Origin: Ophelia neglecta | Lineage: Eukaryota | DNA: 64,000 nucleotides | NCBI GenBank assembly: GCA_965285935.1 | Contig: OZ260662.1 | Span: 48,298,001-48,362,000 of the forward strand | Direction of reading: 5' to 3' | Shown: piece by piece, positions 1,432 to 27,571 of the stretch | Layout: every line of letters starts with the position of its first letter | How positions within the stretch are numbered: position 1 is the stretch's first letter | The notes under the pieces: generated by a model | What the model was told of the DNA's origin: nothing | Seen by the model: the letters and a program-made list of their open reading frames with translations, nothing else | Database searches by the model: none | Program-made: the position numbers and the translations under genes

Positions 1432-3869
1432 TTGTATGGCTCCAAAACACTTTATGTTTGTGGATGCTATAGACCCCATACAGGGGACATATCTGGACAC
1501 GAGGCAATTATGAGGTCCATAAGTAGAGCACCTCAGTGCACTAACTCCCATATTTGGATTGCAGGTGACCTAAATTACCCAGGTCTTGACTGGCAGTCCA
1601 ATACAGTTAAATCAGGCTGCAGCTATGCAACCATACATCAAGAATTTCTTGACTTTCTGAGTGATCATAGCTTAGCCCAATTAGTTAGAGAACCAACTAG
1701 AGGACAAAATATACTAGATTTATTCATAACAAACAACCCTACTCTTGTAAATCAAGTATCTGTTGGACCTGGAGTAGCAGACCACAGCAAGGTCCTTGCT
1801 GAAATAAATGTTAAACCCATCACCCTGGAACAGGAAAGAAGGGAAATACCCCTTTACAACAAAACAAACTGGCAGCCCATGAGGAATGACCTACTAAATG
1901 CTCTTAATACTTTAGACACAGAAACTCTCTCAATAGATCAGATATGGACAACACTAAAAAACAACATCGAGACATGTATCAAGAAATATGTACCACACAA
2001 ACTAGCTAGAAAGAAAAACAGTCTACCCTGGCTATCAGCAAATACCAGAAGAATCCTGAAAAAGAAGGATAAACTTCACAGTCGTAAGAAAAAGAGTGGC
2101 AAACCTGAACATATTACTCACTTCAAATCAGTCAGTGCCCTAGCCCAAAAAATGATCAGGCAGGACTACTGGCAATATGTCAAACAGCTGGTGTCTCCCG
2201 CAGAAGGAGAGACCAAACTGGTGAGCACAAAGAAATGTTGGACTTTCATTAAGCACTGTAAAAATGACACTACCGGCGTGGCACCATTAGAGGATGAAAC
2301 TGGTACAGTTCACTCCGATGGCGCCACCAAGGCAAACATACTAAATAGGCAATTTAGTTCTGTATTCTCTAAACCTGCACCACTGAGCCTGAAGCAGAGC
2401 TGTTTGCGAAATACACCTGCACACCTAATTCCAACTAGCATGCAGTCCCCCCATCCTGACCTTATTGACTTCGACATAGGCCTGGAAGGGGTGCATAAAC
2501 TACTACAAAACCTGAGGCCACATAAGGCGGCGGGACCAAATGGACTCAGACCTCTGATCCTCCAACAACTGGGGAGTGTCATTGCTCCCACTCTCCAAAT
2601 TATTTTCCAGAGATCTCTGAGTGAGGGTAAACTGCCTGAGGATTGGTGTCATGCTAATGTTGTTCCCATCTTTAAGAAAGGCCCTAAACATGCACCTGCT
2701 AATTACAGGCCTGTCTCTCTCACATGTATATGCAGCAAATTAATGGAGCATATTATCTCCAGCCAGGTTAGGAAACACCTAGACTCCAATAATATCTTAT
2801 CTCCCTTTCAGCACGGATTTCGCTCTAGGAGATCCTGTGAAACCCAGCTTATCGAATTTGTCCAAGACCTACATACGACCTGTGAAAAAGGTCGATACAC
2901 TGAAGGAATCATCATGGATTTCAGTAAGGCCTTTGATAAGGTCTCACACCACAAATTGCTATTTAAACTAAACTGGTATGGTATTAGAGGCCAGACTCTT
3001 GATTGGATTGGTGACTTTCTGGCAGATAGGAAGCAGCGAGTAGCCCTGGACGGAATTTTCTCGGACACGTGTAGTGTCACTTCAGGCGTCCCACAGGGTT
3101 CGGTCCTTGGACCAATCTTGTTTCTAATATACATTAATGACCTTCCTGACTGTGTATCATCCAATACCCGGCTATTTGCTGATGATACCATAATATACAG
3201 AGAAATTAACACTGTCCAAGACACAATTACCCTACAAAGGGATCTGACTAAACTTGAAAACTGGTCAAACCTTTGGCAAATGGAATTCCACCCTAAAAAA
3301 TGTGCTGTCCTTAAAATTGGCCGGAAAAAGACACAATTCAACTCCACTTACATACTTTACAATCAAGCCCTGGAACAAGTAGACACCGCTAAATACCTCG
3401 GCATTACCCTCTCCTCTGACCTCTCTTGGAACACACACATTAACAATATTTCTAACAAAGCCAGCCAAACACTCGGATTTCTCAAACGGAACTTAAAAAT
3501 TCATTCTCCTGACATTAAAGCTAAAGCCTATATGGGTCTGGTTCGTCCAAAGATGGAGTACGCGGCAGCAGTGTGGGACCCCCATACAGCAAACAATATA
3601 TACAAACTTGAGCAGGTCCAGCGCAGGGCAGCCCGCTGGACACTCAACCGTTTCCACAACACCTCTAGCGTCACCTCCATGTTATGTCAACTGGAGTGGC
3701 CAACCTTACAACAACGTAGATACACAGCCAGACTCACCATGATGTACAAAATGGTGTACAGTACTGTAGGTGTCAACCCCTATCAATATTTACAACCTAT
3801 CTCTAGACCCACTAGATTCTCACATCCTCTAACTTTCCTTCAGCCACATTGTTCAACCACCGCTTATAG
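1432..3869 (+). pseudogene. LINE ORF2 (endonuclease-reverse transcriptase), 5' part
   Basis: Open frame with EN and RT motifs. Removing 3870-27459 rejoins ..TTAY|SMSFFPRT.. in frame. Confidence 0.92.
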
Positions 3870-4323
3870 CACAGGGCCTTTTAAAACTGAAATCTCCCAT
3901 ATATAGTCACTATATACTATATAAAAATAACAAGGGAACAGACTCCTGCATGGAGTCCGACAGGCATCTCTCAGCTTAAAGCCCGATATTTTCAAAAATT
4001 CAACACAATCCTCCACTTTCACTGCACAAATCTGTCCTCAGGTAATAATACTTTCAATAAAACACAATAAATGTCCAGTCAAATCATATAATTTTTCTAT
4101 ACCAAGCCTCAAATGCAGCTTTTTACCCCTATTTTGACAAGGACAACATCTACTGGGCACATCCACCACTCACCAGTTAACAGGTAAACAGCAACTTCAG
4201 CTGCAGTTCCATGGATCATATGTACATTCCTTGCCCTGGCTGTAGGCCCTGGCCCATTACACTCGACTATTTGGGGTTGTCATCCCCTAAATAGCCTTAT
4301 ATTTGCCAAAATGTAACAAAATC
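3870..4323 (+). repeat. Left TIR of outer element (454 bp)
   Basis: Reverse complement of 26998-27451. Confidence 0.93.
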
Positions 4324-4649
4324 GTGACAAAATCATCCTGTTGAGGTTATTTCAATTTGTTTATATCCATCCGCAGCAAATGCATGCTGGACGTAACACC
4401 TGCTGTGATTGGCTGAATAATAATGATTTATTTATCTAGCCATAAACTATGTAAAGTGTTCAAATACATGTATTCAAATAAAAAATGAATGTTTGTTTGT
4501 TTTACTATTTATTTGAATGGTCTTTCTAATATATTTTTGCGTTTGAAGCCTATTTTTCACGTGCGACAATGCTGCCATCTGAAGGGAGACTGGTATGCCG
4601 CGAAATTTGAAATTTTTTCCTATGAAAGTATCACTTTTATAGTTTGAAA

Positions 4650-5103
4650 CACAGGGCCTTTTAAAACTGAAATCTCCCATATATAGTCACTATATACTAT
4701 ATAAAAATAACAAGGGAACAGACTCCTGCATGGAGTCCGACAGGCATCTCTCAGCTTAAAGCCCGATATTTTCAAAAATTCAACACAATCCTCCACTTTC
4801 ACTGCACAAATCTGTCCTCAGGTAATAATACTTTCAATAAAACACAATAAATGTCCAGTCAAATCATATAATTTTTCTATACCAAGCCTCAAATGCAGCT
4901 TTTTACCCCTATTTTGACAAGGACAACATCTACTGGGCACATCCACCACTCACCAGTTAACAGGTAAACAGCAACTTCAGCTGCAGTTCCATGGATCATA
5001 TGTACATTCCTTGCCCTGGCTGTAGGCCCTGGCCCATTACACTCGACTATTTGGGGTTGTCATCCCCTAAATAGCCTTATATTTGCCAAAATGTAACAAA
5101 ATC
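4650..5103 (+). repeat. Left TIR of inner element (454 bp)
   Basis: Reverse complement of 15867-16320 and direct copy of 3870-4323. Confidence 0.93.
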
Positions 5104-5442
5104 GTGACAAAATCATCCTGTTGAGGTTATTTCAATTTGTTTATATCCATCCGCAGCAAATGCATGCTGGACGTAACACCTGCTGTGATTGGCTGAATAA
5201 TAATGATTTATTTATCTAGCCATAAACTATGTAAAGTGTTCAAATACATGTATTCAAATAAAAAATGAATGTTTGTTTGTTTTACTATTTATTTGAATGG
5301 TCTTTCTAATATATTTTTGCGTTTGAAGCCTATTTTTCACGTGCGACAATGCTGCCATCTGAAGGGAGACTGGTATGCCGCGAAATTTGAAATTTTTTCC
5401 TATGAAAGTATCACTTTTATAGTTTGAAAAACCTTTAACACC

Positions 5443-8400
5443 ATGGGAAATGAGAAATGCTTTGCAGCAAATTGGTACGTATCAATACAAATTTTCCTAT
5501 TTATTCTTTTGAGGAATTAAATGGAATTTAATTGGAATAGGCCCACATAGTATCAAAATAAATTGTATAATATTACATTACACTGTAAGGCCCTGTAAAC
5601 CAGACAAAAGATGAAAAGAAAAGCTTAAGCCCCAGGAAATTAATTTTCTGTTAGGGGATACTTTATGGAAAAATTGCTTTTCCCCAATATTAAGAGCTTC
5701 AAAAAAGTAGGATGCTTACCCTACCAAACATTCAATTCAGCACAAAATTAAGATGCTTGCAACTATGTGAATATTAATCAGTATTAATGTAAATAAATAA
5801 TGGGAGGAATATTGCCTCATTTATTCCAATATATATATCCCTATTCTAATAAATGCCTCTCCTCTGCGTCTGATAAATAATGTCTCTCCTGAAATGTCAT
5901 ACAGCCCCAACCCCCCACCCCCCCCCCCCCCCCACCCCCCAAAAAAATTCATAAACTCCCACTTGTGTCATTTTTTCTACTTCCCGAGTTGAATTATTTA
6001 CCACCTTTTGGCATGTTAACCAGGGCTTCTAAATTTTATGCCACAATCAGAGTTGTCTTTTTTTAGTCAGCATTGGGGATTTGAGAGAATTAGCATACAT
6101 TTCACAGCAGGGATTCATATTTGAGATTGGACTCGGCTTCATTAATTGTCTAATGCTTTTAGGAAAAAGAACAATAAAATGAGAACCTTTGAACATAACA
6201 TATTTATATGTACAAATAACAGGGCCCTGTTGTACAACTATAGATGTATTCAGATGTCATATAGCATAATAATGTGCTGTGTATAGCAACCATTCTCTCA
6301 GTAGTTATGTTATTTACTTACAAATAATGTGCATACTGCCTTCAGTGCCTTGGTTACTATCACATTTAATATAATAGGTTAACCCATTAGGCATCAAAAT
6401 AGTTTTTATTGCAATTAAACATATTATTAGTTATTCCAACAAAAGGAAATAACTTCAGATTTCAAGAATGACTTTAACAGGGAGTAATTATCAAAGACAA
6501 TATTTGAATGTTATACATAATATTCATTACATAACACATCTTTTATGATTCAATCTCAATAAAATACTTAATTTTATCTCAAATGAGCTCTCTTACACCA
6601 CACCCCGAGGGGGGGGGCACTCTGTATACTGGGGTTATTACATATGTGCCGCCGTTTCGACCCCCCTTTTTCGACCTATGTAAAATTTCGACCCCCTGTT
6701 TTTTACCTTCATGTAGAATTTCGACCCCTGTTTTTAGCATATGTACAACTTTTGATTGAAATGTAGAATTTCGACCCCTATATTTGGTTGAAATATAGAA
6801 TTTTTCCCCTATATCTGGCTGAAATGTAGAATATCGACCCCTGTTTTCAGCAATTTTTGTAGAGTTTGCGCCTGTGATTCGAAGACTGGGCGACACAATT
6901 GTACCAATTTCCAGACTGAGTGCCCCCCCCCCCCCCCCCCCGGGCACCACACTGTGTAAAGTCGAGATGATCACACTTTCATTGCCAACAATGTGGCATG
7001 AGAGAGTGGCCCTTTAACTCCATAATTGATGAAACAGTTAAATGTAATACTAGTGTTATCACCAATGGTCAAAACAACAAAATTCCCTAATAGCAGTTAT
7101 AAAAGCAACTAGACCAATTACAATTAAATTCTTTTTTATTGCTAGGATTTTGAGGAACACCGCCCCATCTGAAGAGGGCCGACTTAGCAAAGATGAGGTT
7201 TTCTTTGCATATTTTGAGCATGCATCAGCAACAGCTTCAGCACCTGACATCATTGATACTGTTCCATTTGGTAAGCTGTTCCTACGTTTAACAGGAACCA
7301 AGACAGTCAATCAACGTTATGGCAGAACTTTCAAGAAGGTTTATCTTGGTATAACATGGGCATCACCAGAAAGTACCCCTCTACCTGAATTTACAGCAAA
7401 GGAATTCCTCAATATTATACCCTCAAACGTGTCAGTGTGTCAACCATCTGAGGGGCTGATAACTGTTACCTGCTCATTAGACACTAAATGTGATGGAAGA
7501 ACCATACAAAAAGAGGTAAAATTTCACAGGAATGGGTATTGGGAGTTACATGTAGATAGTTTTCCAGTGGAACTTCATCAAATTGGCATTGATAATCATT
7601 TTAATATGACAGACAGAGAGGTGAAGGTAATCTTGTCCCTAGTTGAAAAAATTGATGTTTGTGGGGGCAAGACATGCCCAACATCTGGTGTATTGGTGAA
7701 GACATGCTTGTTACATAAAGTAACATATCCTGATGGACAAAAAAGTAACACAATACAAAGCACCTCTTGCCAAAGGGTCCTATCACTCATTTCCTCTGGC
7801 AAGTCCTGTAATACATGTAGATTAATAAAAGTATATGAACAGAAAAAACATGGGAATGTTCAAAATGTTGATCAGGCAGCTGGCCAAACATTCCAAGATG
7901 TCATTAGGAAATGGATTCCAAACATTTCAGCCAGTGCACTTGAGTTGTTTACCTCCCAAGTCAGCAACACAGGAAATTCTGGTAATCGTTGGAGTGGTTA
8001 CCATGAAACTATTCGTTGGTCCTTGGCCCTCTGGCTCCGTAGTAAGCAAGCGTACGCTGACCTTCGGAGGATGACTGGCTTGCATCTTCCGAGTGAGGAG
8101 ACATTGCGTTTCCACAAAAACAGTGTGTCACATGGTGCAGGTCTCCAGGAGGAAAATATAAAGTGGATGTACCTAGAGGCAAAAAGGCTGAAAGTTCCTC
8201 AAAATGGATGGGAGGGAGGATTACTCATTGATGAGATGTCTATACAGCCCTCTTTGGACTTTCAGCGCGATGGCAAGTTCCTGAAAATTGTAGGCTACAA
8301 CAATCTTGGCGAGACCTGTGATGCCATGGCTACTCTAAGGAGGGGCAGTGATGAGCGTCAACTTGCAGACCATGTTTTGCAAATCTCATTTCAAGGATTA

Positions 8401-9558
8401 ACACACTTCCGCTTTTCAGTTGCCCACTACCCCTCTAACCAAGTGTCATCTGGCCAACTGAATTATTTATTCCATCAGGCAGTGTCACTCCTAAAAAGTT
8501 ATGGCTTCAGGGTCACTTACGTAAGCCTTGATGGGGCACAAGCAAACCGTACATTTGTCAAAATGTCATTTCCAAACAACGATGCCCGGGAAAAGAAAAT
8601 GACCATGGAGTCACCAATTGGAAGTGGTGCCATTACTTTTATCATGGATTTTTCTCATGTGATTAAAAAAATCCGAAATTCCATTGAGAGCAGCCGAGTT
8701 GATGGTAAGCGGCTCCTCACCTTGCCATCAATGAAAACAGTTGAATGGCAGCATTGGCAGAGTGCCTATGATTGGGATAAGGGCAATCCACTTGCCTTAC
8801 ACCGTCATCTAACAGATGAACACATACTGACTTTGTCCAATGCCTCCAAAATGAGGAACCACCTAGCAGAACATGTTTTGAATTCAGACATGTACAACTT
8901 GATGCTCGCCTACCAATCCAGTTTGGGAAGTCATGGTTCACATTTGGATGGTCCTATTGAGCTCCTCAACAACACACGGACCATGATTACAAACTTCCGA
9001 GACACAAGGGCTCTCTGTGAACCTTCCGATCCTAGACTGAAAGAAAACCTCAGTGTTCAACAGTGGTTCAAAAGCTGGGAAGTCTGGGCACTCAATCGCA
9101 CTGACATCTCCCAACAGCAGCGTAAAGCACTCCTGATGACTGAGCAGTGTCGAGAGGATCTAGATTCTTGCTTGTTAGGATTTGATGAACTGTGTCGTCG
9201 GCGAATGTCGGAGGAAACCACCAGTCGGTATTCCATCATACCTGCAAGCATAAACAGTGATGCAATAGAAAACAACTTCTGTCAAGTTCGTGGACTGAAT
9301 GGATCAAATCAAAATCCAACCTATTCACAATACCAAAAGACCATGAACACTGTCACTGTTCTGAGGCCTTTAGTCTCAAAGAAGGGCAATGCAACTGCAG
9401 GCCGTGAGGGAGCAGAAGCTTTAACCTTGAAGAGAGCAGCCTCCCAAACCAGCAAGATTGTCAAAAAGAAGCCCTTTACAGATCTGACTAACTTGTACGT
9501 ACTGTTATCTTATCAATATGTTTTCAAATTTTCACCATATCTCCATATTTATTATTAA
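5443..9558 (+). CDS. P-element-family (THAP9-like core) DDE transposase, inner copy; predicted exons 5443-5474 and 7146-9558, ~814 aa
   Basis: Motifs RW..SKQAYADLR..LPSEETL, IDEM (D), SLDGAQANR (D), DFSHVIKKIRN, KMRNHLA, SDAIENNF (E), NPT. Exon 1 is inferred from accATGG, a TG|gtacgt donor and a ttgctag|G acceptor that match in phase. Confidence 0.9.
6604..6944. mobile_element. Non-autonomous MITE in transposase intron (inner copy)
   Basis: TIR CCCGAG(G)nCACTC / GAGTG(C)nGGG, 8-bp TSD CACCACAC (6596-6603 / 6945-6952), internal repeats of ATGTAGAATTTCGACCCC. Confidence 0.8.
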
Positions 9559-9636
9559 GTTATTAAGAATACTGTAGATAAAATATTTCAGAGTATAAAA
9601 AGTACCTGGTTGTTTTAAAATGTTGTGGCAGTAACA

Positions 9637-11911
9637 TCATAGCAAACACACTGGGCACATAAACTCCTCATCTTCGGACTGGTACTTCTGGTATTCCTCC
9701 ACAGTAAGACCAGAACAGACTCGATGTAACCAACTGAAACATTACCAGTACAAAACATGCAAAAGGATGATATCAGTCACTAAAATGACATGAACATGAT
9801 GCATAAAGCCATACTGGAGTGTAGTCTCCAGACTTTTTTCATACATCGTAGAATATGTTTGTGCAAAATTTTACTTCATCGGTGGAAGAATGTCGTTAGT
9901 AGTTACATTGCAATATTTAAGTAGAAAGATGTTTTCAACATGTAACATATACAATTACAGTAGAACCTTCCTTAAAGACCACCCCTTTATACAGACCACC
10001 TGTCTATTTTGACCACCCACTTTAAGAACAGAAAGTCGGGGTTTCATTGAAAATCAACCTGTCTTAACAGACTGCTTGTCTGGAGAGACCAGCATTTCTC
10101 AGTCCCATTGGTGGTCTTAATAGACAGGTTCCAATGTATATGACAACATCACAGCTTATACATGTACATATCTATAGCAATTTTTAAAAACAATTAACAG
10201 GTCATTGACCATACTTTGGTAGTAACATGATAATTGTGCTCAGCTGCAGCTGGACAGAATATTTAACAAACAAATGAGTAATGTCAGTTAACTTACCCAT
10301 CACACAGGTCACAGCATATCCATTCCTCACCACTCTCTTCTTGCTTCTTGCAGACAAGGCATGCCGGCGGATGTGAAACCTCAGAAACTGGTTCTGCCAC
10401 GACACCATCCAGTATGTGGTGAGCAGAAGCTGAAAGATGATGAAGCTCTTGGTCCTGAGGTGTCTGACTACAGTCTTGGATACCCTGCTCCAAGCTAGGA
10501 AGTAAGTCCTTCTTTGTATTGCTTTTGGGCTTTTTGATGTTGTATGCCTGACACAAGGTTAAAAGGTCATTCTTCAAGAATTTGTTCAACTTCGTTCTAG
10601 ACATTTTTGCCAATTTCAAGTGAATGTCACCTGCAATATTTGCAGCTTTTGTTTCACCAGCATGGCGAGATGCTTTTCTTGGTTTTTTAGAGCCTGTGCC
10701 TGCCACTACTGCTTTCCTATTCCGCTTGGACGGATTCCCTTGAACATGCTGCCCTATTTGAGTTCTGTGTGCCTTTTTTTTGGGAAGAGCACTGAGAATA
10801 TCTCGCCTCCACTGTCTCATCATTGTCCGTGTGAATACCTGAACCATGTCTTCATGCAGTGATGTGATTAAGGGAGAGTCCATGTTTTGGCCTTCAAACA
10901 TAGTATGCACACTCCTTAACACATCTGGGTCTTTCATAATTTCAGAGAAGACTAATCGATGAACATCATCTCCAAATTTAGCAATGTTCTTGCTTCCTAT
11001 CAAGGATAGGAATTTCTCACATATTACCCCAAAATAAGAAAATGCTGTATCAGAGATGTTGGTTAGTCCTTGGGAAATGTTCTGTTTGGCCTTTATTTCC
11101 TGCAAACTCAAGGGGTCATTTGTCTCAGCCTCTATCTGATCAGGTGACTTACACAGAGTTTTCAGAAGAATCATCTTCTGATATGATTCCTCCCAAAGTT
11201 TAAGTTCCTGTGAGGAACAGTTGTACATTTTCCTCCCCAGTCGCAGATTCAGCTGTTTGCGGCACTGATGGATCACATATCCCGAAACATATCGCAGTTT
11301 GCCCCTAACATCAGAGTTATGCATTCTGCCTTTCAAACTGCTAAATCGCCTGGACTCTTTTCCATGCTCCTGTTCTATGTGTTTTTCTGTGCGCACAAGT
11401 GTCACTGCAGTAGAAAGCTTGTACACCATTTTCCAGCATATGTCTTTACACATGTCATCGAGCTTGTCCCCAAAAGTCTCTTTCATCATAGTCTGATATG
11501 TTGATTGGTGAAACATACCTGCAAGCACATACAGAAGTGTTCAAATTCCATTTTAAGCATTTAATTTCATTCATAATAGCAATAATTTATTTCAATGCTT
11601 TTTATTACAGGGCATTCCCACCTGCCTCTCTAAGTAGAATTATATTAGTAAGACTATTGCAATCAGCCTCAATGTTTATATAAATGAAAATTGTAAACAA
11701 CTCCAGATTTTACTTCTTCAACATTAAATAATTAAGTCTCTGGAATGTATGGAATGTATTTGTATTACACAATTGTATATATAAATTTTATGAGTTGACC
11801 CACTGAATGTATACATTCCACAGTTTGGCTTTTGAAACTATACATTCAATGACTAAAATGGCCTATCGGATGTATACATGTACATTCCAATGGATGTAAA
11901 CATTCAATACA

Positions 11912-11958
<47 letters not shown>

Positions 11959-14900
11959 GGAGGATGGCCAACTTTGATTATGGCATAACAAGAGTTATAC
12001 AAGGCCCCTTACCTGCCAGCCACTTCTGATAAGTGGTTTCTTCATTTGGATCTTTCGGAGGTATCCTTGGAATTAATGATTCATGCTTTTCATATATTTT
12101 GGAATACATTTTTGCCACAAATTTGAGGAAGTTATCATCTGCTTTGAGAATTTCAATCTTGGCATTATATGAGACATGGTATTCTGTGACTTCTTCCCTA
12201 TATGTGAAAAGTTCCAGTGAAAGATTGACATCAAAGTCATCAGGAAGAGCCTGTTGAATTGTATTCGAGTTCTCATCGCCAATTTCCTGATCATCATTCT
12301 CTTCCAGAATTAATTGTGCACAAGCTTCAATATCAGCAATATCGTCAATGTCAATGTCAGAGTCCCATTCTACTTCATCATTTAGAGCTTCTGCTTGTGT
12401 TTTCACAGGAAGCGCTGGTGGAGCTAGGTGATGGCAGCATGACTCAGTTACTGGCTGTGATGGGTTATTGGCAACGCCAATATCATCAGGCTGTGGAGGA
12501 ACTATGGCACCTCGAGAGAAGTTCACAAGTCTGAGTCCAGCTGAAGACCTAACACGACCAAGGGCAACTCCCAGCATCCCAGGACTGCCGATTAGCCCAC
12601 AGTGTATCTCAACATTCTCAAGGGTCATACCCTGAGCCTTGTGGATGGTCAAGCCATATGCAAGGTTGAATGGAAACTGCTTCCGGGTGGCTTCATCAAC
12701 TTTTTTTTTTGGATTGTACTCTGAAATAAACAGGAAATGATGTAAAATGTGGCCAAATGTTAACAGTAAGTTAATGTGGTTTCTGCTGTAACACTGCCAT
12801 TAATTGTCAAGAATCATAGGCCTATATGTATGTCAAATCAATTAGAGCATGTTTTATGCTTATTTTTCTAATTAAACTATGTAGTAACATATCCATCATA
12901 AACATGCAAGGTACAAGAGTATAAATTTTACAGGGTAAAATCAGTACAATTGATTGTTTTGTAGCCTCTAAGGCAACCTGAACTTGTAACATTGTTGGGG
13001 TAAATTAAACCAGGCAATGTAATAGGAAAATGCAAATATTGCTAAATGTGAATGTAGTGTGACTGAGCACTGAAGATTTATCTCTTCTCTATTGGTTCAA
13101 TGATTTAAATCAAATTCATTTTCACAATTTAACTACTGAATGAAGCAAATTGGCCACACATCTATGATATCTGAATATCAAAAATTGACAAAATTTCAAC
13201 AAATATCTCATAGTGGGGAAATGTTGCCAATATGTTGTTATCCACTAACCAGAAAATCAGTTTGGTATGGCCTCACCACCCACTTTTCAAATAGAGGATT
13301 ATGCAATTTCTGCCCAGCTTAAACCTATTTCTCCCTGTAGAGCAGAAACTTTGCAACCCTGCACATGCGCATTTTAAAGAAGGCTTACTTCCCGGCTTTT
13401 TTTTATAAGTATGGAATATAGAGAAGATGAATCATTGCACAATGGAAGGAATATGGAATGAAACAAACCTGTGAAAGTGTCTCTTGTGAAATCAGTTGTC
13501 AAGTTGATATCCTCAAAATGGACTTTCAGTATGTCATCATTGAAGTCAACTAGATAGCCCAGTAGTCCATTTACCAGGCGGGGGTCTTTATGCATGTAGT
13601 TCTTTGAAAGGATGAGTGGGCAGCCCCTCCTAATTTGTAGCTGTTCTGGAACTGCCATGGCTTTCAAGAAATCTGGATTACCAGAATCTACAGCAGCATA
13701 GCACTTCTCAGGCCCACCATGCTAAAAAGATGACCATACAGCAATTTATTTAAAATTTATTTTGGGAATTTATTTTCATTAATTTCTTACAAAAAATTAT
13801 AGTGTGGTATGAAATAAGCACAGTTATGTGTGAAGAGCATGAGGGTTCTCACCTTCAACAACATCTCTCGGTTGTGCTTGTTGACCTCGAATTTTCGAGG
13901 GAACAGTTTTACTATTTTCCCATCTGGGACCGGTAATGGCTTGCTGTGAGAGGACAGGAATTGGATCGTTTCCTCTGAGGGCTTTCCTTGTGCAACTTCC
14001 TGCACAGCCTGGATATAAAAAAAGATTGATATGGTGTTTCAGTGTAATGGTAATGACATATGAAAGTCAGAAAAAAACAGGTAGAAAATAGCTGACACCC
14101 CCCCCCCTCTACACACACCCACCCACATACCCTAATACACAGTGGAACACTTTGAGTGATAACTTACAAGGAATGGATATTTTCAGCCTATTCTATGCAC
14201 TTGTATTTTTTTTACTCTATTATTCAATAACTGAAGACAATTTCAATATTTGGATTAGTTTTAATAGGCTCGGAATTAATTCACCAGCTTTACTGATATT
14301 GCTTTCATACCTAATTTACTATTTATTGAAGATACACAATCTAGAAAATGGACACTGCAAAAAAACCCTCAATGACAGTGTTTGAGAATTAAATCTGTTT
14401 TATATTGCCTTTTCAATTCATATTTATTAAATGCTTACATTTATCAGCAATGTTTCTTCCTGTCGAAGAACTTGCTGAAGCACAATGGTGTGTTGTACAG
14501 CGGCTGTCCATGCTGGTGACTTGTAGCAGGGCTCCCCAGGGTCATTGTACAGCACATTACGGACAGGCCGAAGTTGTAGGAAGTCACCTACAAAGATGAC
14601 CTGCAACCCTCCAAATGCTTCTTCAGTCTGAAAGTTAGAAAGTCAATCATTATATCAACACATTGACAAATAAAAACACAAGGGTATAGGCCTGCCTTTA
14701 GCCACACGTGGAAAGGGATGTTTTAATGAATCATTCACGTGATGGGCACAATATAAAGCTTATGCCTGAAAACTTTTAAATTTGTCTTGTAGATTAGCTA
14801 GACCTACCTTGCGCACCTTCCGGCAAATGTATTCTATTTGCTTAAGTAGTCGGGCACTTAACATAGAAATTTCATCAATGATGAGGGTATTAGTGTCCTC

Positions 14901-15678
14901 AAGCCTCCTTTTGGCACCTTCTTTTCTTTGATCAGAACATATGAGATGAAGTGCTTCCTCATCTTCATAGCGCCCATCTTGTATCCCTGCCCATCTAGCA
15001 AAACATGATTAAATTCATTATAATAACAGACATTAGAATTTATTTTCGATATCGCATTGATTTCTGAGGTAAAGGGCCTTTTTTAGAGGCCTTTTATTTA
15101 TAGGGAACAAAAACAAAGCAGCAAAAATGGTGCCAGTTGGCCCGAAAGAAAAAAAGGGCCTCGGAATCAGTTGCCAAAAGAGAGGGTTTCATCGATGAGG
15201 AGACTTTGCAAATGGGGTTAACTCAGACTCTCATGATGTAAAAATGGGTTTCTTGGAGATATATAGGGGAAATATTGGAAATGGGGTCTAGAGAGAGAGA
15301 GAGAGAGGGGGGGGGTACCTACTACGGCCGATATAGGGAGCCCCCCCCCCCCCCCCCCCCCCGTGTGGCACAGACTTCTCAAATATCGGTAGTAATAATT
15401 TATTTTGGACAAGAAGCATTTTCATCATAAATAACAGTTGTTACAAGTGCTTACCTGTGGATTGTTTGCGCTTTGCACCTCAGCTGAGCACTGGCCGATC
15501 CGGTGGTGCAGGTCACAGCAACAACTTGGTTAGCCACATGGTTAAGCTCATTGAAAATATGTCTCACTGTCTGGGATTTCCCAGTTCCTGCCTGGCCAAG
15601 CAGGCAGAAACTGTGTCCTTTCAAAGCCAGATGTAAGGCCCTTTGCTGTTCCTCCGTCAAAAGCATGACAGATGACAT
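9637..15678 (-). CDS. Pif1-family helicase / PHD-finger multidomain protein, inner copy; exons 15678-15455, 14994-14808, 14627-14439, 14008-13853, 13721-13469, 12720-12013, 11518-10297, 9733-9637 (~1011 aa)
   Basis: Walker A GQAGTGKS, TIHRWAGI, LIIDEISML, FGGLQVIFVGDFLQLRPV, RQ, LVNG, RKQFPFNLAYGLTIHKAQGMTL, VALGRVR. C-terminal PHD CLVC..WICCDLCDGWLHRVC..FMCPVC. All introns are GT-AG with consistent phases. Confidence 0.9.
9958..10136. mobile_element. pogo/Tigger-like (Tc1/mariner superfamily) MITE in helicase intron 7
   Basis: TA flanks and imperfect TIR CAGTAGAACC..AAGACCACC / GGTGGTCTT..GGTTCCAATG. Confidence 0.65.
11912..11958. repeat. (CA)n(TA)n microsatellite (also at ~22804-22850)
   Basis: Seen directly. 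Confidence 0.9.
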
Positions 15679-15734
15679 TTAAACAGAATGAAACACTTTT
15701 AACACGACTGACTACACCATGTGCGTTTATGTTT

Positions 15735-15775
15735 ATCCTTTAAATAGCCCTCTACAGCTCCCAGCCAATCACAGG
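15735..15775 (-). promoter_or_regulatory. Putative promoter of the helicase gene (TATTTAA box and CCAAT box)
   Basis: Minus-strand CTATTTAAAGG ~60 bp upstream of ATG 15678 and AGCCAATCA at ~15763-15771. A mirrored TGATTGGCT lies at ~5186 upstream of the transposase. Confidence 0.45.
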
Positions 15776-15866
15776 CCTCCTTACATTCTGACTCCTCACT
15801 TGGCCTTTACTGCTGGGTAGCTTTCAAAATGGTGGCTGAAGCAGCAGAATTTGAAGTCAGCAGGAT

Positions 15867-16320
15867 GATTTTGTTACATTTTGGCAAATATAAGGCTATT
15901 TAGGGGATGACAACCCCAAATAGTCGAGTGTAATGGGCCAGGGCCTACAGCCAGGGCAAGGAATGTACATATGATCCATGGAACTGCAGCTGAAGTTGCT
16001 GTTTACCTGTTAACTGGTGAGTGGTGGATGTGCCCAGTAGATGTTGTCCTTGTCAAAATAGGGGTAAAAAGCTGCATTTGAGGCTTGGTATAGAAAAATT
16101 ATATGATTTGACTGGACATTTATTGTGTTTTATTGAAAGTATTATTACCTGAGGACAGATTTGTGCAGTGAAAGTGGAGGATTGTGTTGAATTTTTGAAA
16201 ATATCGGGCTTTAAGCTGAGAGATGCCTGTCGGACTCCATGCAGGAGTCTGTTCCCTTGTTATTTTTATATAGTATATAGTGACTATATATGGGAGATTT
16301 CAGTTTTAAAAGGCCCTGTG
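15867..16320 (-). repeat. Right TIR of inner element
   Basis: Inverted copy of 4650-5103. Confidence 0.93.
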
Positions 16321-16341
16321 GTTTGAAAAACCTTTAACACC

Positions 16342-19300
16342 ATGGGAAATGAGAAATGCTTTGCAGCAAATTGGTACGTATCAATACAAATTTTCCTATT
16401 TATTCTTTTGAGGAATTAAATGGAATTTAATTGGAATAGGCCCACATAGTATCAAAATAAATTGTATAATATTACATTACACTGTAAGGCCCTGTAAACC
16501 AGACAAAAGATGAAAAGAAAAGCTTAAGCCCCAGGAAATTAATTTTCTGTTAGGGGATACTTTATGGAAAAATTGCTTTTCCCCAATATTAAGAGCTTCA
16601 AAAAAGTAGGATGCTTACCCTACCAAACATTCAATTCAGCACAAAATTAAGATGCTTGCAACTATGTGAATATTAATCAGTATTAATGTAAATAAATAAT
16701 GGGAGGAATATTGCCTCATTTATTCCAATATATATATCCCTATTCTAATAAATGCCTCTCCTCTGCGTCTGATAAATAATGTCTCTCCTGAAATGTCATA
16801 CAGCCCCAACCCCCCACCCCCCCCCCCCACCCCCCAAAAAAATTCATAAACTCCCACTTGTGTCATTTTTTCTACTTCCCGAGTTGAATTATTTACCACC
16901 TTTTGGCATGTTAACCAGGGCTTCTAAATTTTATGCCACAATCAGAGTTGTCTTTTTTTAGTCAGCATTGGGGATTTGAGAGAATTAGCATACATTTCAC
17001 AGCAGGGATTCATATTTGAGATTGGACTCGGCTTCATTAATTGTCTAATGCTTTTAGGAAAAAGAACAATAAAATGAGAACCTTTGAACATAACATATTT
17101 ATATGTACAAATAACAGGGCCCTGTTGTACAACTATAGATGTATTCAGATGTCATATAGCATAATAATGTGCTGTGTATAGCAACCATTCTCTCAGTAGT
17201 TATGTTATTTACTTACAAATAATGTGCATACTGCCTTCAGTGCCTTGGTTACTATCACATTTAATATAATAGGTTAACCCATTAGGCATCAAAATAGTTT
17301 TTATTGCAATTAAACATATTATTAGTTATTCCAACAAAAGGAAATAACTTCAGATTTCAAGAATGACTTTAACAGGGAGTAATTATCAAAGACAATATTT
17401 GAATGTTATACATAATATTCATTACATAACACATCTTTTATGATTCAATCTCAATAAAATACTTAATTTTATCTCAAATGAGCTCTCTTACACCACACCC
17501 CGAGGGGGGGGGCACTCTGTATACTGGGGTTATTACATATGTGCCGCCGTTTCGACCCCCCTTTTTCGACCTATGTAGAATTTCGACCCCCTGTTTTTTA
17601 CCTTCATGTAGAATTTCGACCCCTGTTTTTAGCATATGTACAACTTTTGATTGAAATGTAGAATTTCGACCCCTATATTTGGTTGAAATATAGAATTTTT
17701 CCCCTATATCTGGCTGAAATGTAGAATATCGACCCCTGTTTTCAGCAATTTTTGTAGAGTTTGCGCCTGTGATTCGAAGACTGGGCGACACAATTGTACC
17801 AATTTCCAGACTGAGTGCCCCCCCCCCCCCCCCGGGCACCACACTGTGTAAAGTCGAGATGATCACACTTTCATTGCCAACAATGTGGCATGAGAGAGTG
17901 GCCCTTTAACTCCATAATTGATGAAACAGTTAAATGTAATACTAGTGTTATCACCAATGGTCAAAACAACAAAATTCCCTAATAGCAGTTATAAAAGCAA
18001 CTAGACCAATTACAATTAAATTCTTTTTTATTGCTAGGATTTTGAGGAACACCGCCCCATCTGAAGAGGGCCGACTTAGCAAAGATGAGGTTTTCTTTGC
18101 ATATTTTGAGCATGCATCAGCAACAGCTTCAGCACCTGACATCATTGATACTGTTCCATTTGGTAAGCTGTTCCTACGTTTAACAGGAACCAAGACAGTC
18201 AATCAACGTTATGGCAGAACTTTCAAGAAGGTTTATCTTGGTATAACATGGGCATCACCAGAAAGTACCCCTCTACCTGAATTTACAGCAAAGGAATTCC
18301 TCAATATTATACCCTCAAACGTGTCAGTGTGTCAACCATCTGAGGGGCTGATAACTGTTACCTGCTCATTAGACACTAAATGTGATGGAAGAACCATACA
18401 AAAAGAGGTAAAATTTCACAGGAATGGGTATTGGGAGTTACATGTAGATAGTTTTCCAGTGGAACTTCATCAAATTGGCATTGATAATCATTTTAATATG
18501 ACAGACAGAGAGGTGAAGGTAATCTTGTCCCTAGTTGAAAAAATTGATGTTTGTGGGGGCAAGACATGCCCAACATCTGGTGTATTGGTGAAGACATGCT
18601 TGTTACATAAAGTAACATATCCTGATGGACAAAAAAGTAACACAATACAAAGCACCTCTTGCCAAAGGGTCCTATCACTCATTTCCTCTGGCAAGTCCTG
18701 TAATACATGTAGATTAATAAAAGTATATGAACAGAAAAAACATGGGAATGTTCAAAATGTTGATCAGGCAGCTGGCCAAACATTCCAAGATGTCATTAGG
18801 AAATGGATTCCAAACATTTCAGCCAGTGCACTTGAGTTGTTTACCTCCCAAGTCAGCAACACAGGAAATTCTGGTAATCGTTGGAGTGGTTACCATGAAA
18901 CTATTCGTTGGTCCTTGGCCCTCTGGCTCCGTAGTAAGCAAGCGTACGCTGACCTTCGGAGGATGACTGGCTTGCATCTTCCGAGTGAGGAGACATTGCG
19001 TTTCCACAAAAACAGTGTGTCACATGGTGCAGGTCTCCAGGAGGAAAATATAAAGTGGATGTACCTAGAGGCAAAAAGGCTGAAAGTTCCTCAAAATGGA
19101 TGGGAGGGAGGATTACTCATTGATGAGATGTCTATACAGCCCTCTTTGGACTTTCAGCGCGATGGCAAGTTCCTGAAAATTGTAGGCTACAACAATCTTG
19201 GCGAGACCTGTGATGCCATGGCTACTCTAAGGAGGGGCAGTGATGAGCGTCAACTTGCAGACCATGTTTTGCAAATCTCATTTCAAGGATTAACACACTT

Positions 19301-20450
19301 CCGCTTTTCAGTTGCCCACTACCCCTCTAACCAAGTGTCATCTGGCCAACTGAATTATTTATTCCATCAGGCAGTGTCACTCCTAAAAAGTTATGGCTTC
19401 AGGGTCACTTACGTAAGCCTTGATGGGGCACAAGCAAACCGTACATTTGTCAAAATGTCATTTCCAAACAACGATGCCCGGGAAAAGAAAATGACCATGG
19501 AGTCACCAATTGGAAGTGGTGCCATTACTTTTATCATGGATTTTTCTCATGTGATTAAAAAAATCCGAAATTCCATTGAGAGCAGCCGAGTTGATGGTAA
19601 GCGGCTCCTCACCTTGCCATCAATGAAAACAGTTGAATGGCAGCATTGGCAGAGTGCCTATGATTGGGATAAGGGCAATCCACTTGCCTTACACCGTCAT
19701 CTAACAGATGAACACATACTGACTTTGTCCAATGCCTCCAAAATGAGGAACCACCTAGCAGAACATGTTTTGAATTCAGACATGTACAACTTGATGCTCG
19801 CCTACCAATCCAGTTTGGGAAGTCATGGTTCACATTTGGATGGTCCTATTGAGCTCCTCAACAACACACGGACCATGATTACAAACTTCCGAGACACAAG
19901 GGCTCTCTGTGAACCTTCCGATCCTAGACTGAAAGAAAACCTCAGTGTTCAACAGTGGTTCAAAAGCTGGGAAGTCTGGGCACTCAATCGCACTGACATC
20001 TCCCAACAGCAGCGTAAAGCACTCCTGATGACTGAGCAGTGTCGAGAGGATCTAGATTCTTGCTTGTTAGGATTTGATGAACTGTGTCGTCGGCGAATGT
20101 CGGAGGAAACCACCAGTCGGTATTCCATCATACCTGCAAGCATAAACAGTGATGCAATAGAAAACAACTTCTGTCAAGTTCGTGGACTGAATGGATCAAA
20201 TCAAAATCCAACCTATTCACAATACCAAAAGACCATGAACACTGTCACTGTTCTGAGGCCTTTAGTCTCAAAGAAGGGCAATGCAACTGCAGGCCGTGAG
20301 GGAGCAGAAGCTTTAACCTTGAAGAGAGCAGCCTCCCAAACCAGCAAGATTGTCAAAAAGAAGCCCTTTACAGATCTGACTAACTTGTACGTACTGTTAT
20401 CTTATCAATATGTTTTCAAATTTTCACCATATCTCCATATTTATTATTAA
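16342..20450 (+). CDS. P-element-family transposase, outer copy; predicted exons 16342-16373 and 18038-20450
   Basis: The ORF-track protein is identical to the inner copy. Confidence 0.9.
17499..17836. mobile_element. MITE in transposase intron (outer copy)
   Basis: Same TIRs and CACCACAC TSD as 6604-6944. Confidence 0.8.
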
Positions 20451-20528
20451 GTTATTAAGAATACTGTAGATAAAATATTTCAGAGTATAAAAAGTACCTG
20501 GTTGTTTTAAAATGTTGTGGCAGTAACA

Positions 20529-22803
20529 TCATAGCAAACACACTGGGCACATAAACTCCTCATCTTCGGACTGGTACTTCTGGTATTCCTCCACAGTAAG
20601 ACCAGAACAGACTCGATGTAACCAACTGAAACATTACCAGTACAAAACATGCAAAAGGATGATATCAGTCACTAAAATGACATGAACATGATGCATAAAG
20701 CCATACTGGAGTGTAGTCTCCAGACTTTTTTCATACATCGTAGAATATGTTTGTGCAAAATTTTACTTCATCGGTGGAAGAATGTCGTTAGTAGTTACAT
20801 TGCAATATTTAAGTAGAAAGATGTTTTCAACATGTAACATATACAATTACAGTAGAACCTTCCTTAAAGACCACCCCTTTATACAGACCACCTGTCTATT
20901 TTGACCACCCACTTTAAGAACAGAAAGTCGGGGTTTCATTGAAAATCAACCTGTCTTAACAGACTGCTTGTCTGGAGAGACCAGCATTTCTCAGTCCCAT
21001 TGGTGGTCTTAATAGACAGGTTCCAATGTATATGACAACATCACAGCTTATACATGTACATATCTATAGCAATTTTTAAAAACAATTAACAGGTCATTGA
21101 CCATACTTTGGTAGTAACATGATAATTGTGCTCAGCTGCAGCTGGACAGAATATTTAACAAACAAATGAGTAATGTCAGTTAACTTACCCATCACACAGG
21201 TCACAGCATATCCATTCCTCACCACTCTCTTCTTGCTTCTTGCAGACAAGGCATGCCGGCGGATGTGAAACCTCAGAAACTGGTTCTGCCACGACACCAT
21301 CCAGTATGTGGTGAGCAGAAGCTGAAAGATGATGAAGCTCTTGGTCCTGAGGTGTCTGACTACAGTCTTGGATACCCTGCTCCAAGCTAGGAAGTAAGTC
21401 CTTCTTTGTATTGCTTTTGGGCTTTTTGATGTTGTATGCCTGACACAAGGTTAAAAGGTCATTCTTCAAGAATTTGTTCAACTTCGTTCTAGACATTTTT
21501 GCCAATTTCAAGTGAATGTCACCTGCAATATTTGCAGCTTTTGTTTCACCAGCATGGCGAGATGCTTTTCTTGGTTTTTTAGAGCCTGTGCCTGCCACTA
21601 CTGCTTTCCTATTCCGCTTGGACGGATTCCCTTGAACATGCTGCCCTATTTGAGTTCTGTGTGCCTTTTTTTTGGGAAGAGCACTGAGAATATCTCGCCT
21701 CCACTGTCTCATCATTGTCCGTGTGAATACCTGAACCATGTCTTCATGCAGTGATGTGATTAAGGGAGAGTCCATGTTTTGGCCTTCAAACATAGTATGC
21801 ACACTCCTTAACACATCTGGGTCTTTCATAATTTCAGAGAAGACTAATCGATGAACATCATCTCCAAATTTAGCAATGTTCTTGCTTCCTATCAAGGATA
21901 GGAATTTCTCACATATTACCCCAAAATAAGAAAATGCTGTATCAGAGATGTTGGTTAGTCCTTGGGAAATGTTCTGTTTGGCCTTTATTTCCTGCAAACT
22001 CAAGGGGTCATTTGTCTCAGCCTCTATCTGATCAGGTGACTTACACAGAGTTTTCAGAAGAATCATCTTCTGATATGATTCCTCCCAAAGTTTAAGTTCC
22101 TGTGAGGAACAGTTGTACATTTTCCTCCCCAGTCGCAGATTCAGCTGTTTGCGGCACTGATGGATCACATATCCCGAAACATATCGCAGTTTGCCCCTAA
22201 CATCAGAGTTATGCATTCTGCCTTTCAAACTGCTAAATCGCCTGGACTCTTTTCCATGCTCCTGTTCTATGTGTTTTTCTGTGCGCACAAGTGTCACTGC
22301 AGTAGAAAGCTTGTACACCATTTTCCAGCATATGTCTTTACACATGTCATCGAGCTTGTCCCCAAAAGTCTCTTTCATCATAGTCTGATATGTTGATTGG
22401 TGAAACATACCTGCAAGCACATACAGAAGTGTTCAAATTCCATTTTAAGCATTTAATTTCATTCATAATAGCAATAATTTATTTCAATGCTTTTTATTAC
22501 AGGGCATTCCCACCTGCCTCTCTAAGTAGAATTATATTAGTAAGACTATTGCAATCAGCCTCAATGTTTATATAAATGAAAATTGTAAACAACTCCAGAT
22601 TTTACTTCTTCAACATTAAATAATTAAGTCTCTGGAATGTATGGAATGTATTTGTATTACACAATTGTATATATAAATTTTATGAGTTGACCCACTGAAT
22701 GTATACATTCCACAGTTTGGCTTTTGAAACTATACATTCAATGACTAAAATGGCCTATCGGATGTATACATGTACATTCCAATGGATGTAAACATTCAAT
22801 ACA

Positions 22804-22850
<47 letters not shown>

Positions 22851-26809: not shown

Positions 26810-26997
26810 TTAAACAGAATGAAACACTTTTAACACGACTGACTACACCATGTGCGTTTATGTTTATCCTTTAAATAGCCCTCTACAGCTCCCAGCCAAT
26901 CACAGGCCTCCTTACATTCTGACTCCTCACTTGGCCTTTACTGCTGGGTAGCTTTCAAAATGGTGGCTGAAGCAGCAGAATTTGAAGTCAGCAGGAT

Positions 26998-27451
26998 GAT
27001 TTTGTTACATTTTGGCAAATATAAGGCTATTTAGGGGATGACAACCCCAAATAGTCGAGTGTAATGGGCCAGGGCCTACAGCCAGGGCAAGGAATGTACA
27101 TATGATCCATGGAACTGCAGCTGAAGTTGCTGTTTACCTGTTAACTGGTGAGTGGTGGATGTGCCCAGTAGATGTTGTCCTTGTCAAAATAGGGGTAAAA
27201 AGCTGCATTTGAGGCTTGGTATAGAAAAATTATATGATTTGACTGGACATTTATTGTGTTTTATTGAAAGTATTATTACCTGAGGACAGATTTGTGCAGT
27301 GAAAGTGGAGGATTGTGTTGAATTTTTGAAAATATCGGGCTTTAAGCTGAGAGATGCCTGTCGGACTCCATGCAGGAGTCTGTTCCCTTGTTATTTTTAT
27401 ATAGTATATAGTGACTATATATGGGAGATTTCAGTTTTAAAAGGCCCTGTG
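26998..27451 (-). repeat. Right TIR of outer element
   Basis: Inverted copy of 3870-4323. Confidence 0.93.
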
Positions 27452-27459
27452 GCTTATAG

Positions 27460-27571
27460 CATGTCCTTTTTCCCCAGGACAGCAATTCAGTGGAATGCGT
27501 TGCCCCAGAGCACAGTGCAGGCACCCTCTGTAGAGGCATTTAGGTGCCAGCTACTGGGGCTTCACAACTAA
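27460..27571 (+). pseudogene. LINE ORF2 C-terminal remainder
   Basis: SFFPRTAIQWNALP is the typical CR1/L2 ORF2 C-terminal motif and lies directly after the TSD. Confidence 0.9.

Follow-up and report, generated by a model that had tools for sequence, protein, structure and literature searches.

We identified a complete DNA transposon of 11,671 bp at positions 4650-16320 of a window of 64,000 nucleotides from Ophelia neglecta (contig OZ260662.1, positions 48,298,001 to 48,362,000), carrying 2 convergent intact genes and inserted inside a second copy of the same element (3870-27451). The features of the 2 nested copies were as follows, in positions of the window.

3862-3869: TSD GCTTATAG of the outer copy, left
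3870-4323 (+): left TIR of the outer copy
4642-4649: TSD GTTTGAAA of the inner copy, left; also part of the outer copy, 14 bp upstream of that copy's transposase ATG
4650-16320 (+): inner, complete element
4650-5103 (+): left TIR of the inner copy, starting CACAGGGCC
5443-5474 (+): candidate transposase exon 1 (ATG, 32 nt, donor TG|GTACGT)
7146-9558 (+): transposase exon 2, stop included, with an RFX-like winged helix near 7190-7350, D361, D461, and E707 (ORF numbering) at about nt 8230, 8530, and 9268, DxxH at about nt 8647, and no C-terminal domain (CTD)
15455-15678 (-): helicase exon 1 (ATG, Walker A GQAGTGKS)
14808-14994 (-): helicase exon 2 (Walker B IIDEISM, start of the Pif1 signature motif)
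14439-14627 (-): helicase exon 3 (FGGLQVIFVGDFLQLRPV, motif III)
13853-14008 (-): helicase exon 4
13469-13721 (-): helicase exon 5 (2B/SH3-like region)
12013-12720 (-): helicase exon 6 (TIHKAQG motif, end of the helicase core, acidic linker)
10297-11518 (-): helicase exon 7, with a predicted P-transposase CTD-like helical domain (ORF residues 66-251, about nt 10776-11333), a second small helical motif, and the first half of the PHD finger
9637-9733 (-): helicase exon 8 (second half of the PHD finger, stop)
15867-16320 (-): right TIR of the inner copy
16321-16328: TSD GTTTGAAA of the inner copy, right
16329-27451 (+): rest of the outer copy, with its transposase ORF at 18042-20450, helicase exon 7 at about 21188-22417, helicase exon 1 at 26585-26809, and the right TIR at 26998-27451
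27452-27459: TSD GCTTATAG of the outer copy, right

The TIR arms of the inner copy were 454 nt long (457 nt counting 3 TSD bases) and 100% complementary, with ends reading CACAGGGCC...GGCCCTGTG (CACAGG...CCTGTG) and flanked by a perfect 8-bp TSD. The outer copy, which was left out of the initial annotation, measures 11,903 bp without the insert, and its 454-nt arms were likewise 100% complementary. The coding sequences of the 2 copies were identical, and differences were found only at intronic positions. Unitigs from the same repeat family read straight across a single GCTTATAG, with a loose end at 3871, and this acts as a paralogous empty site; however, the nested structure rests on the assembly, and unitigs could not bridge the junctions. 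These are the only 2 full-length copies of this particular family. The TIR gave 524 first-look candidate matches in the genome, of which 40 were scored, most at about 90% identity, and 4 of 4 foldback derivatives of 1,075 bp, made almost entirely of 2 arms, had perfect 8-bp TSDs. Further, 2 other lineages of the clade, B and E, had the same CACAGG termini, with a perfect 8-bp TSD in the lineage-B copy, whereas in lineage E the flanking 8 bp matched at 6 of 8 positions.

The transposase was encoded by an open frame at 7150-9558 (+), in which Pfam searches identified TNP-like RNaseH_N (PF21787) at E 8.5e-14 and PF21789 at E 1.6e-4, the latter just under its cut-off (22.1 bits against 24). The candidate ATG exon joins in phase to the best acceptor at 7146 through a split Trp codon, giving a protein of 814 aa. 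The motifs DEM, SLDG..NR, DxxH, and NSDxIEN were conserved. The best PDB match of the AF2 model in a Foldseek search was the Drosophila P transposase (6pe2_A, E 4.9e-19; TM 0.71-0.73 for 6pe2_A/6p5a_A), followed by Hermes at about 1e-5, although the model rests on only 14 sequences (pLDDT 74). The model ended in disorder after residue 738, and no CTD family hit was obtained in any transposase of this clade, nor did the GTP-binding (GBD) model PF21788 hit the clade. The DNA-binding N-terminus was RFX-like and not THAP.

The second gene comprised 8 exons on the minus strand with GT-AG introns throughout and no internal stop, and encoded a Pif1 helicase ending in a PHD finger, with a length of 1011 aa as given in the initial annotation, Walker A at aa 28, and a C4HC3 PHD pattern at aa 959-1009. 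Splicing is inferred from the sequence and from intronless relatives, without RNA support. The stops of the 2 genes were 78 bp apart (9558 against 9637). Exon 1 matched Pfam PIF1 at E 3.5e-6 (27.2 bits), Pif1_2B_dom was found in relatives, and all ATPase motifs were intact. A family representative scored E 1.6e-59 against yeast Pif1 and 6.5e-8 against Helraiser; the helicase is much nearer to cellular PIF1 than to the Helitron helicase, and the Helitron parallel is therefore analogy only. The middle domain was carried by 276 database representatives, the long ones with the architecture PIF1, 2B, and middle domain and most ending in a PHD finger, which was found in 39 of 57 aligned relatives. 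No Rep/HUH domain appeared in any relative.

Interestingly, the middle domain of the helicase protein resembled the CTD that the transposase lacks. In a structural comparison of its AF2 model (pLDDT 85) with 48,161 chains, the top hit was 6p5a_B, the P-transposase CTD, at Z 11.2 and rmsd 2.6 with 118 of 118 residues aligned, whereas the next hit had Z 7.4. However, the match is a helical bundle at 13% identity, helical models can reach Z of about 13-14 by chance, and Pfam CTD models did not hit the domain directly. The top ESM Atlas neighbor was a THAP9_C cluster at TM 0.53 over the same residues. Further, more distant P-like elements in this genome, of the GBD type, encode a homologous domain on a separate ORF of ~335 aa (ORF2), to which hhalign gave 90% probability and E 1.4e-6, and 1 such ORF2 touched PF12596 at E 5e-4.

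The initial annotation had proposed a P-superfamily system in which the Pif1-PHD gene is a second component and no HUH Rep domain is present, and this was supported. At least 6 diverged lineages in this genome, with 30-45% transposase identity to this element, kept the same exon order and convergent orientation. Out of 16 metagenome loci with at least 3 kb downstream, 15 carried the helicase gene on the opposite strand and none on the same strand. The same linkage was found in assembly GCA_902652985.1 and in the related loci L016, L018, and L019, and relatives occur in bivalve assemblies. Trees of a transposase piece and a CTD piece were largely congruent. No published description of this arrangement was found in the searchable literature, a search that did not extend to Repbase and Dfam.

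We compared the element with the closest known systems. The Drosophila P element and human THAP9 share with it the split RNase H DDE core with an inserted helical domain, the 8-bp TSD, TIRs, and a helical CTD fold present in the system; in contrast, the N-terminus here is RFX-like instead of THAP, the CTD-like domain lies on a second protein fused to a Pif1 helicase and a PHD finger, the TIRs are 454 bp rather than 31 bp, there are 2 genes instead of 1, and PF21788 is not detected in this clade. Galileo and foldback-type P-like elements of Drosophila share the P-type transposase, very long TIRs, and abundant foldback-like nonautonomous copies, although Galileo appears to be described with a transposase only, with no helicase and no trans CTD. 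AcademH is a DDE TIR transposon lineage that also encodes a helicase as well as the transposase (PMC10045372, citing Kojima 2020), but the transposase superfamily differs and its TSDs are 9-10 bp. Helitron/Helentron RepHel uses an element-encoded Pif1-family helicase domain, but this is fused to an HUH Rep nuclease, and Helitrons have neither TIRs nor TSDs. ProtoRAG/Transib with RAG2-like (RAG1-RAG2) is a TIR transposon with 2 genes, a DDE catalytic subunit and a second subunit ending in a PHD finger, and offers a functional analogy for a heteromeric transposase with a chromatin-reading accessory subunit (PMC4411706); however, the folds are unrelated, RAG2 being apparently a Kelch propeller with no helicase and no CTD-like domain, and the transposase superfamily (Transib) and probably the TSD (5 bp) differ.

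We interpret the element, with moderate confidence, as a recently active, autonomous member of a distinct clade of P-superfamily cut-and-paste transposons whose machinery is split over 2 convergent genes. The first encodes the catalytic subunit, with an RFX-like winged-helix N-terminus, a P-type split RNase H (DDE) domain with a helical insertion domain, and a disordered tail, and the second a Pif1-family SF1B helicase followed by the CTD-like helical domain and a C-terminal PHD finger. The link between the 2 proteins is probably structural, although there is no direct evidence that they bind, and their association and the role of each activity are inferred.

Alternatively, the helicase protein may be an accessory repair factor only, which does not join the transpososome but acts after excision, promoting D-loop migration and long-tract synthesis so that the 12-kb element is copied back from the sister chromatid, making transposition effectively replicative. 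The length of elements of this clade in this genome (about 11.7-12.4 kb) and the intact ATPase motifs are consistent with this possibility. However, we consider it unlikely, as it does not explain why a transposase-CTD-like domain is fused to the helicase while the transposase lacks one, nor why helicase-less relatives still keep a separate CTD-like ORF, and compact versions of about 6 kb (L019) keep the helicase too. Still more doubtful is a role as a regulator (repressor or targeting factor), in which the CTD-like domain would compete for, or cap, the transposase and the PHD finger would tether the protein to chromatin. The PHD finger is conserved, a CTD-like domain could bind the transposase without activating it, and truncated P-element proteins appear to act as repressors, but a pure regulator would not need an intact Pif1 motor, yet the motor is conserved over lineages 25-50% identical, and the CTD is an essential part of the Drosophila transposase architecture (PMC7776569). 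A passenger gene, whether host PIF1 captured once or an artefact of nesting with a Helitron-like element or of misassembly, is very improbable and already largely refuted: although the helicase core is closest to cellular PIF1 and the only 2 full copies lie adjacent and nested, the linkage, orientation, and largely congruent trees described above and the absence of a Rep/HUH domain in any relative argue against it, both genes lie between the same TIRs, and the nested copies differ at intronic sites and each has its own TSD.

In the Drosophila P strand-transfer complex, the CTD is tethered by a flexible linker, docks between the RNase H domain of 1 protomer and the insertion domain of the other, and cradles single-stranded transposon-end DNA (PMC7776569). 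We propose, by inference, that the CTD-like domain of the second protein supplies this function in trans and so brings a 5'-3' DNA motor into the transpososome. The motor would then remodel the long TIR ends, or drive the long-tract, homology-directed DNA synthesis that refills the roughly 12-kb excision gap, or both, while the PHD finger would bias the complex towards particular chromatin.

The region 4650-16320 is bounded by arms that are 100% complementary over 454 nt, and an identical octamer flanks both sides. A window-wide repeat search further identified a third and a fourth copy of the arm, with nearly all of 5422-15647 repeated about 10.9-11.1 kb downstream. The features on which the following description rests are:

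3870-27451, outer copy of the element, 11,903 bp without the insert, with its own 8-bp TSD, GCTTATAG
3870-4323, third copy of the arm
4642-4649, octamer GTTTGAAA, left flank of the inner element
4650-5103, left arm of the inner element
5443-5474, plus strand, candidate 32-nt first exon of the transposase
7146, best acceptor joining that exon to the transposase frame
7150-9558, plus strand, 802-codon open frame of the transposase
15867-16320, right arm of the inner element
16321-16328, octamer GTTTGAAA, right flank of the inner element
23954-24194, extra 240 bp in helicase intron 5 of the outer copy
26998-27451, fourth copy of the arm

The ends of the inner element read CACAGGGCC...GGCCCTGTG. 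The layout is L-a-t [L-a-t-Y-R] t-Y-R, which is exactly what results when one copy inserts into another at the target t = GTTTGAAA, and the insertion point lies 14 bp upstream of the transposase ATG of the outer copy. The 2 copies are 99.6-99.9% identical, and every difference is intronic, including 4 substitutions, several homopolymer lengths, and one 240-bp indel. The coding sequences are thus identical, yet the copies are distinguishable, which argues for a real and very recent self-insertion rather than a duplicated assembly, although unitigs from the 3 DNA runs containing the sequence, over 3600-5600, break at the repeat boundaries and neither confirm nor contradict the nested junction at 4649/4650. 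These unitigs do read across an uninterrupted GCTTATAG in other copies of the host repeat, which serves as a paralogous empty site. The host repeat (3600-3869 and 27460-27600) is a high-copy repeat with a unitig depth of several hundred, the outer element being inserted in its 3' part, and the downstream flank of the element translates to a ...FFPRTAIQWNALP...-like tail. Interestingly, the extra 240 bp in the outer copy, which the inner copy lacks, ends in about 45 nt of the TIR terminus (...GGCCCTGTG), followed by sequence resembling the target-site junction, and looks like a scar of an aberrant transposition or template-switch repair event. Several dispersed repeat families at 68-80% identity, unrelated to the element, were identified elsewhere in the window (32700-33400, 42300-42900, 45600-46100, 54800-55200, 58000-58600, and 59750-59900).

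We analyzed the coding potential of the element on both strands. The open frame on the plus strand had a hit to the Pfam TNP-like RNaseH_N domain (PF21787) at E 8.5e-14 (52.5 bits against a cut-off of 24.6) and to RNaseH_C at E 1.6e-4, just under the cut-off, and all 5 aligned relatives hit PF21787. This frame has no in-frame ATG before about codon 150. The 32-nt exon starts with ATG, ends at a TG|GTACGT donor, and joins in phase to the strongest acceptor (ttcttttttattgctAG|G at 7146), the join creating a Trp codon and a predicted protein of 814 aa. On the minus strand, 8 pieces aligned in order to intronless database relatives and are joined by 7 canonical GT-AG introns, giving a model of 1011 aa without internal stop. 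The 2 stop codons are 78 bp apart. Searches were made exon by exon or with database relatives, and splicing remains a prediction, as no RNA run was found to contain the sequence.

The helicase gene is not a passenger. In the same 762-Mb genome, the single-exon pieces of both genes identified distant paralogues that always sit together, with the transposase paralogues 30-45% identical and the helicase-gene exons 23-53% identical. Across 10 loci retrieved, every helicase exon appeared in the same order and in convergent orientation to the transposase, and this holds in at least 5 further lineages (A/F, B/H, C, D/E, and G), each with copies 98-99% identical to one another. Lineages B and E also have long TIRs (171 and 407 bp, respectively) with the same CACAGG termini. 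The lineage-B copy has a perfect 8-bp TSD, ATATTTAC, whereas in lineage E the flanking 8 bp match at 6 of 8 positions.

Outside this genome, an exhaustive search with helicase exon 7 identified 276 representatives. The long ones have the architecture PIF1 + Pif1_2B + middle domain, most ending in a PHD finger, and they start directly with the helicase. Named sources are the bivalves Argopecten irradians and Ruditapes philippinarum, in which both proteins are annotated only as "uncharacterized protein", and another relative lies in assembly GCA_902652985.1. Contigs carrying these proteins showed a convergent P-type transposase next door (loci L016 and L019), while in locus L018 (GCA_902652985.1, record LR736854.1) the transposase lies between the helicase exons and the CTD exon. 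In the reverse test, 119 metagenome stretches encoding a transposase relative were reported and the best 80 loci were retained. Out of the 16 loci with at least 3 kb downstream, 15 carry a Pif1 or middle-domain gene on the opposite strand, and none of the 80 has one on the same strand. In 3 loci (the metagenome loci L030 and L039, and L018), the transposase gene lies antisense inside the large intron between the helicase exons and the CTD-PHD exons of the second gene, instead of tail-to-tail beside it. Trees of a 200-aa transposase piece and a 200-aa middle-domain piece from 10 elements shared their supported groupings, except for 1 metagenome sequence whose position differs and is unsupported in one of the trees. 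With so few taxa, this shows only that there is no strong conflict.

Sequence searches of the transposase against PDB, both as a single sequence and as a 5-sequence profile, gave no hit. However, the AF2 model (14 sequences, pLDDT 74, core above 85) matched the Drosophila P-element transposase strand-transfer complex at E 5e-19 and TM 0.71-0.73 over about 500 columns (6pe2_A at E 4.9e-19 and TM 0.71), with the next superfamily, hAT Hermes, at about 1e-5. Conserved motifs place the catalytic residues at D361, D461, and E707 (ORF numbering), plus DxxH, and this signature is shared by P, hAT, Kolobok, MuDR, and Dada (PMC10045372). A helical insert of about 230 aa (residues 471-701) separates the RNaseH_N and RNaseH_C hits. 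The model aligns to 6p5a_A, a 442-residue chain, over a span that we infer includes the GBD, although PF21788 did not hit this clade. Placement in the P superfamily is further supported by the perfect 8-bp TSDs in 7 insertions (GTTTGAAA, GCTTATAG, ATATTTAC, CCCCCGTC, ATATGGAC, GTTACATT, and GGAGATAG). In contrast, AcademH has TSDs of 9-10 bp (PMC10045372) and an Academ-type transposase.

Two textbook P features are missing. No THAP domain was identified in the transposase. Instead, the N-terminus of the relative in L019 hit RFX_DNA_binding (PF02257) above threshold (E 1.6e-7, 32.2 bits against a cut-off of 27) and aligned to residues 17-226 of the window transposase, where the model shows helix-helix-hairpin at residues 14-66. 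The window protein alone gave no Pfam hit in this region, and the RFX-like assignment is therefore only partly supported. A search of the element for RFX X-boxes found no full site and no enrichment of half-sites at the ends. The second missing feature is a folded C-terminal domain, the model being disordered after residue 738 of 802, with no hit to the CTD families PF12596 and PF22824 in any clade member.

The helicase is a true Pif1-family enzyme. PF05970 was identified on exon 1 at 27.2 bits against a cut-off of 25.9, and the exon translations include Walker A (GQAGTGKS), Walker B (IIDEISM), the Pif1 signature region, motif III, and TIHKAQG, with FGGLQVIFVGDFLQLRPV also among the motifs. 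Intronless relatives hit PIF1 at 1e-24 to 3e-31, plus Pif1_2B. The family representative P0062 scored 1.6e-59 against yeast Pif1 (5o6b) and 4.6e-55 against human PIF1 but only 6.5e-8 against the Helitron Helraiser. In agreement with the initial annotation, which had noted that no HUH Rep domain is present, the helicase starts at residue 5-28 of the protein in the window and in full-length relatives, and no Rep family was found among the Pfam hits. A C4HC3 PHD pattern (C-x2-C...C-x2-C-x4-H-x2-C...C-x2-C) lies at aa 959-1009 and is split by intron 7, and PF00628 was identified in 39 of 57 aligned relatives. Further, a second confident small helical module lies between the CTD-like domain and the PHD finger (10400-10650, exon 7 ORF residues ~291-376). 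Its sequence looks SAP/HeH-like (F.K..L..LC.AY...K..L), 1 relative hit Rho_N at E 1.5e-5, and it may be an extra DNA-binding motif.

The middle domain, encoded by exon 7, had no Pfam or PDB sequence match, but it was predicted to fold confidently as an all-helical domain (pLDDT 85). A Foldseek search of this model against PDB gave nothing below E 0.4, whereas an exhaustive VIA search of 48,161 chains put 1 entry well above the rest. This entry is 6p5a_B, the C-terminal domain (residues 617-734) of Drosophila P transposase, with Z 11.2, rmsd 2.6 Å, and 118 of 118 residues aligned to model residues 66-251, the next entry having Z 7.4. Independently, the nearest ESM Atlas cluster over the same residues (68-264) is "DNA transposase THAP9, C-terminal domain" (PF22824, TM 0.53). 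A third line of evidence comes from more distant P-like transposases in the same genome, at 5 loci (L021-L025, of which L021-L024 lie at C5:33326000-33331500, C1:140562000-140568000, C2:109689000-109695000, and C5:114238000-114243500 of genome G000). These do have the GTP-binding insertion domain, with PF21788 hits, but in L021-L024 no CTD, and where the C-terminal RNase H part was detected (3 of the 5), they end about 50 residues after it. In 4 of the 5 loci (L021-L024), they are followed by a convergent ORF2 of about 335 aa. ORF2 carries the motifs VLFYVAGY, RGGL..PSD.F, and VRGFA, and 1 ORF2 reaches Pfam Tnp_P_element_C (PF12596) at E 5e-4, just under the cut-off. A profile comparison of ORF2 with the exon-7 family gave 90% probability and E 1.4e-6 over 167 columns covering exactly the CTD-like region. 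Helical bundles can reach similar Z by chance, and the sequence link to the CTD families is indirect; our confidence rests on the agreement of 3 independent lines and on the genomic context. We therefore conclude, with moderate confidence, that the CTD is encoded in trans in a larger group of P-like elements and that, in the present clade, this CTD gene carries a Pif1 helicase at its N-terminus and a PHD finger at its C-terminus.

Only 2 full-length copies of this exact family exist in the genome, both in the window, plus 1 truncated copy on another scaffold. The TIR gave 524 first-look candidate matches, of which 40 were scored, most at about 90% identity. The 4 inverted TIR pairs retrieved are 1,075-bp foldback elements made of 2 arms of about 555 bp, each element with a perfect 8-bp TSD.

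In the Drosophila complex, the CTD is joined to the RNase H domain by a disordered linker and sits between the RNase H domain of one subunit and the insertion domain of the other, contacting transposon and target DNA, with the single-stranded part of the transposon end running across it (PMC7776569). A domain that already works in trans across subunits is easy to move onto another polypeptide. Our best reading, held with moderate confidence, is a two-subunit transposase in which protein 1 recognizes and cuts the ends, while protein 2 completes the transpososome through its CTD-like domain and thereby places a 5'-3' helicase at the ends. This association is inferred, as a complex prediction of the transposase core (240-745) with the CTD-like domain (60-265) gave a score of 0.00 and no verdict, which is not evidence either way. 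What the motor then does is open, but we favor either remodeling of the very long TIR or foldback ends, or of their single-stranded portion, or promotion of the long-tract synthesis needed to refill a 12-kb excision gap from the sister chromatid. Drosophila PIF1 contributes to the latter activity in a P-excision gap-repair assay (10.1101/554550). The PHD finger has the WIxCDxC..W.H..C layout, which may be associated with methyl-lysine readers, and a bias toward active promoters is therefore plausible. The 1 fresh insertion, 14 bp upstream of a transposase start codon, fits that idea but is only an anecdote.

More tentatively, these elements could use a heteromeric transposase in which the Pif1 motor is an obligatory, physically integrated subunit, docked through a transposase CTD supplied in trans, with helicase action coupled to DDE cleavage or strand transfer or to BIR-like copying of the element. 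This would be a helicase-coupled mode of cut-and-paste (or effectively replicative) transposition not known for any DDE TIR superfamily, with PHD-guided target choice analogous to RAG2.

In the full-text literature searched, we found no description of a P-type element with a helicase or with a separately encoded CTD, and database relatives are unnamed or labeled "uncharacterized", although prior curation in repeat libraries cannot be excluded. P elements are a textbook transposon and a workhorse genetic tool, and their transposase is understood as a single polypeptide. Apart from Helitrons (HUH enzymes) and AcademH, element-encoded helicases appear to be rare in eukaryotic DNA transposons, and the fusion of the CTD-like domain to a Pif1 helicase links DDE transposition to a DNA motor. 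The copy described here looks intact and young, with a family of short foldback derivatives, making it a practical starting point for functional and structural work and possibly for new large-cargo transposon tools. The finding also explains hundreds of "uncharacterized" Pif1-PHD proteins in bivalve and marine metagenome data. A widespread clade in which the CTD is supplied, as we infer, by another protein would show that the enzyme is modular and give a natural experiment on what the CTD does.
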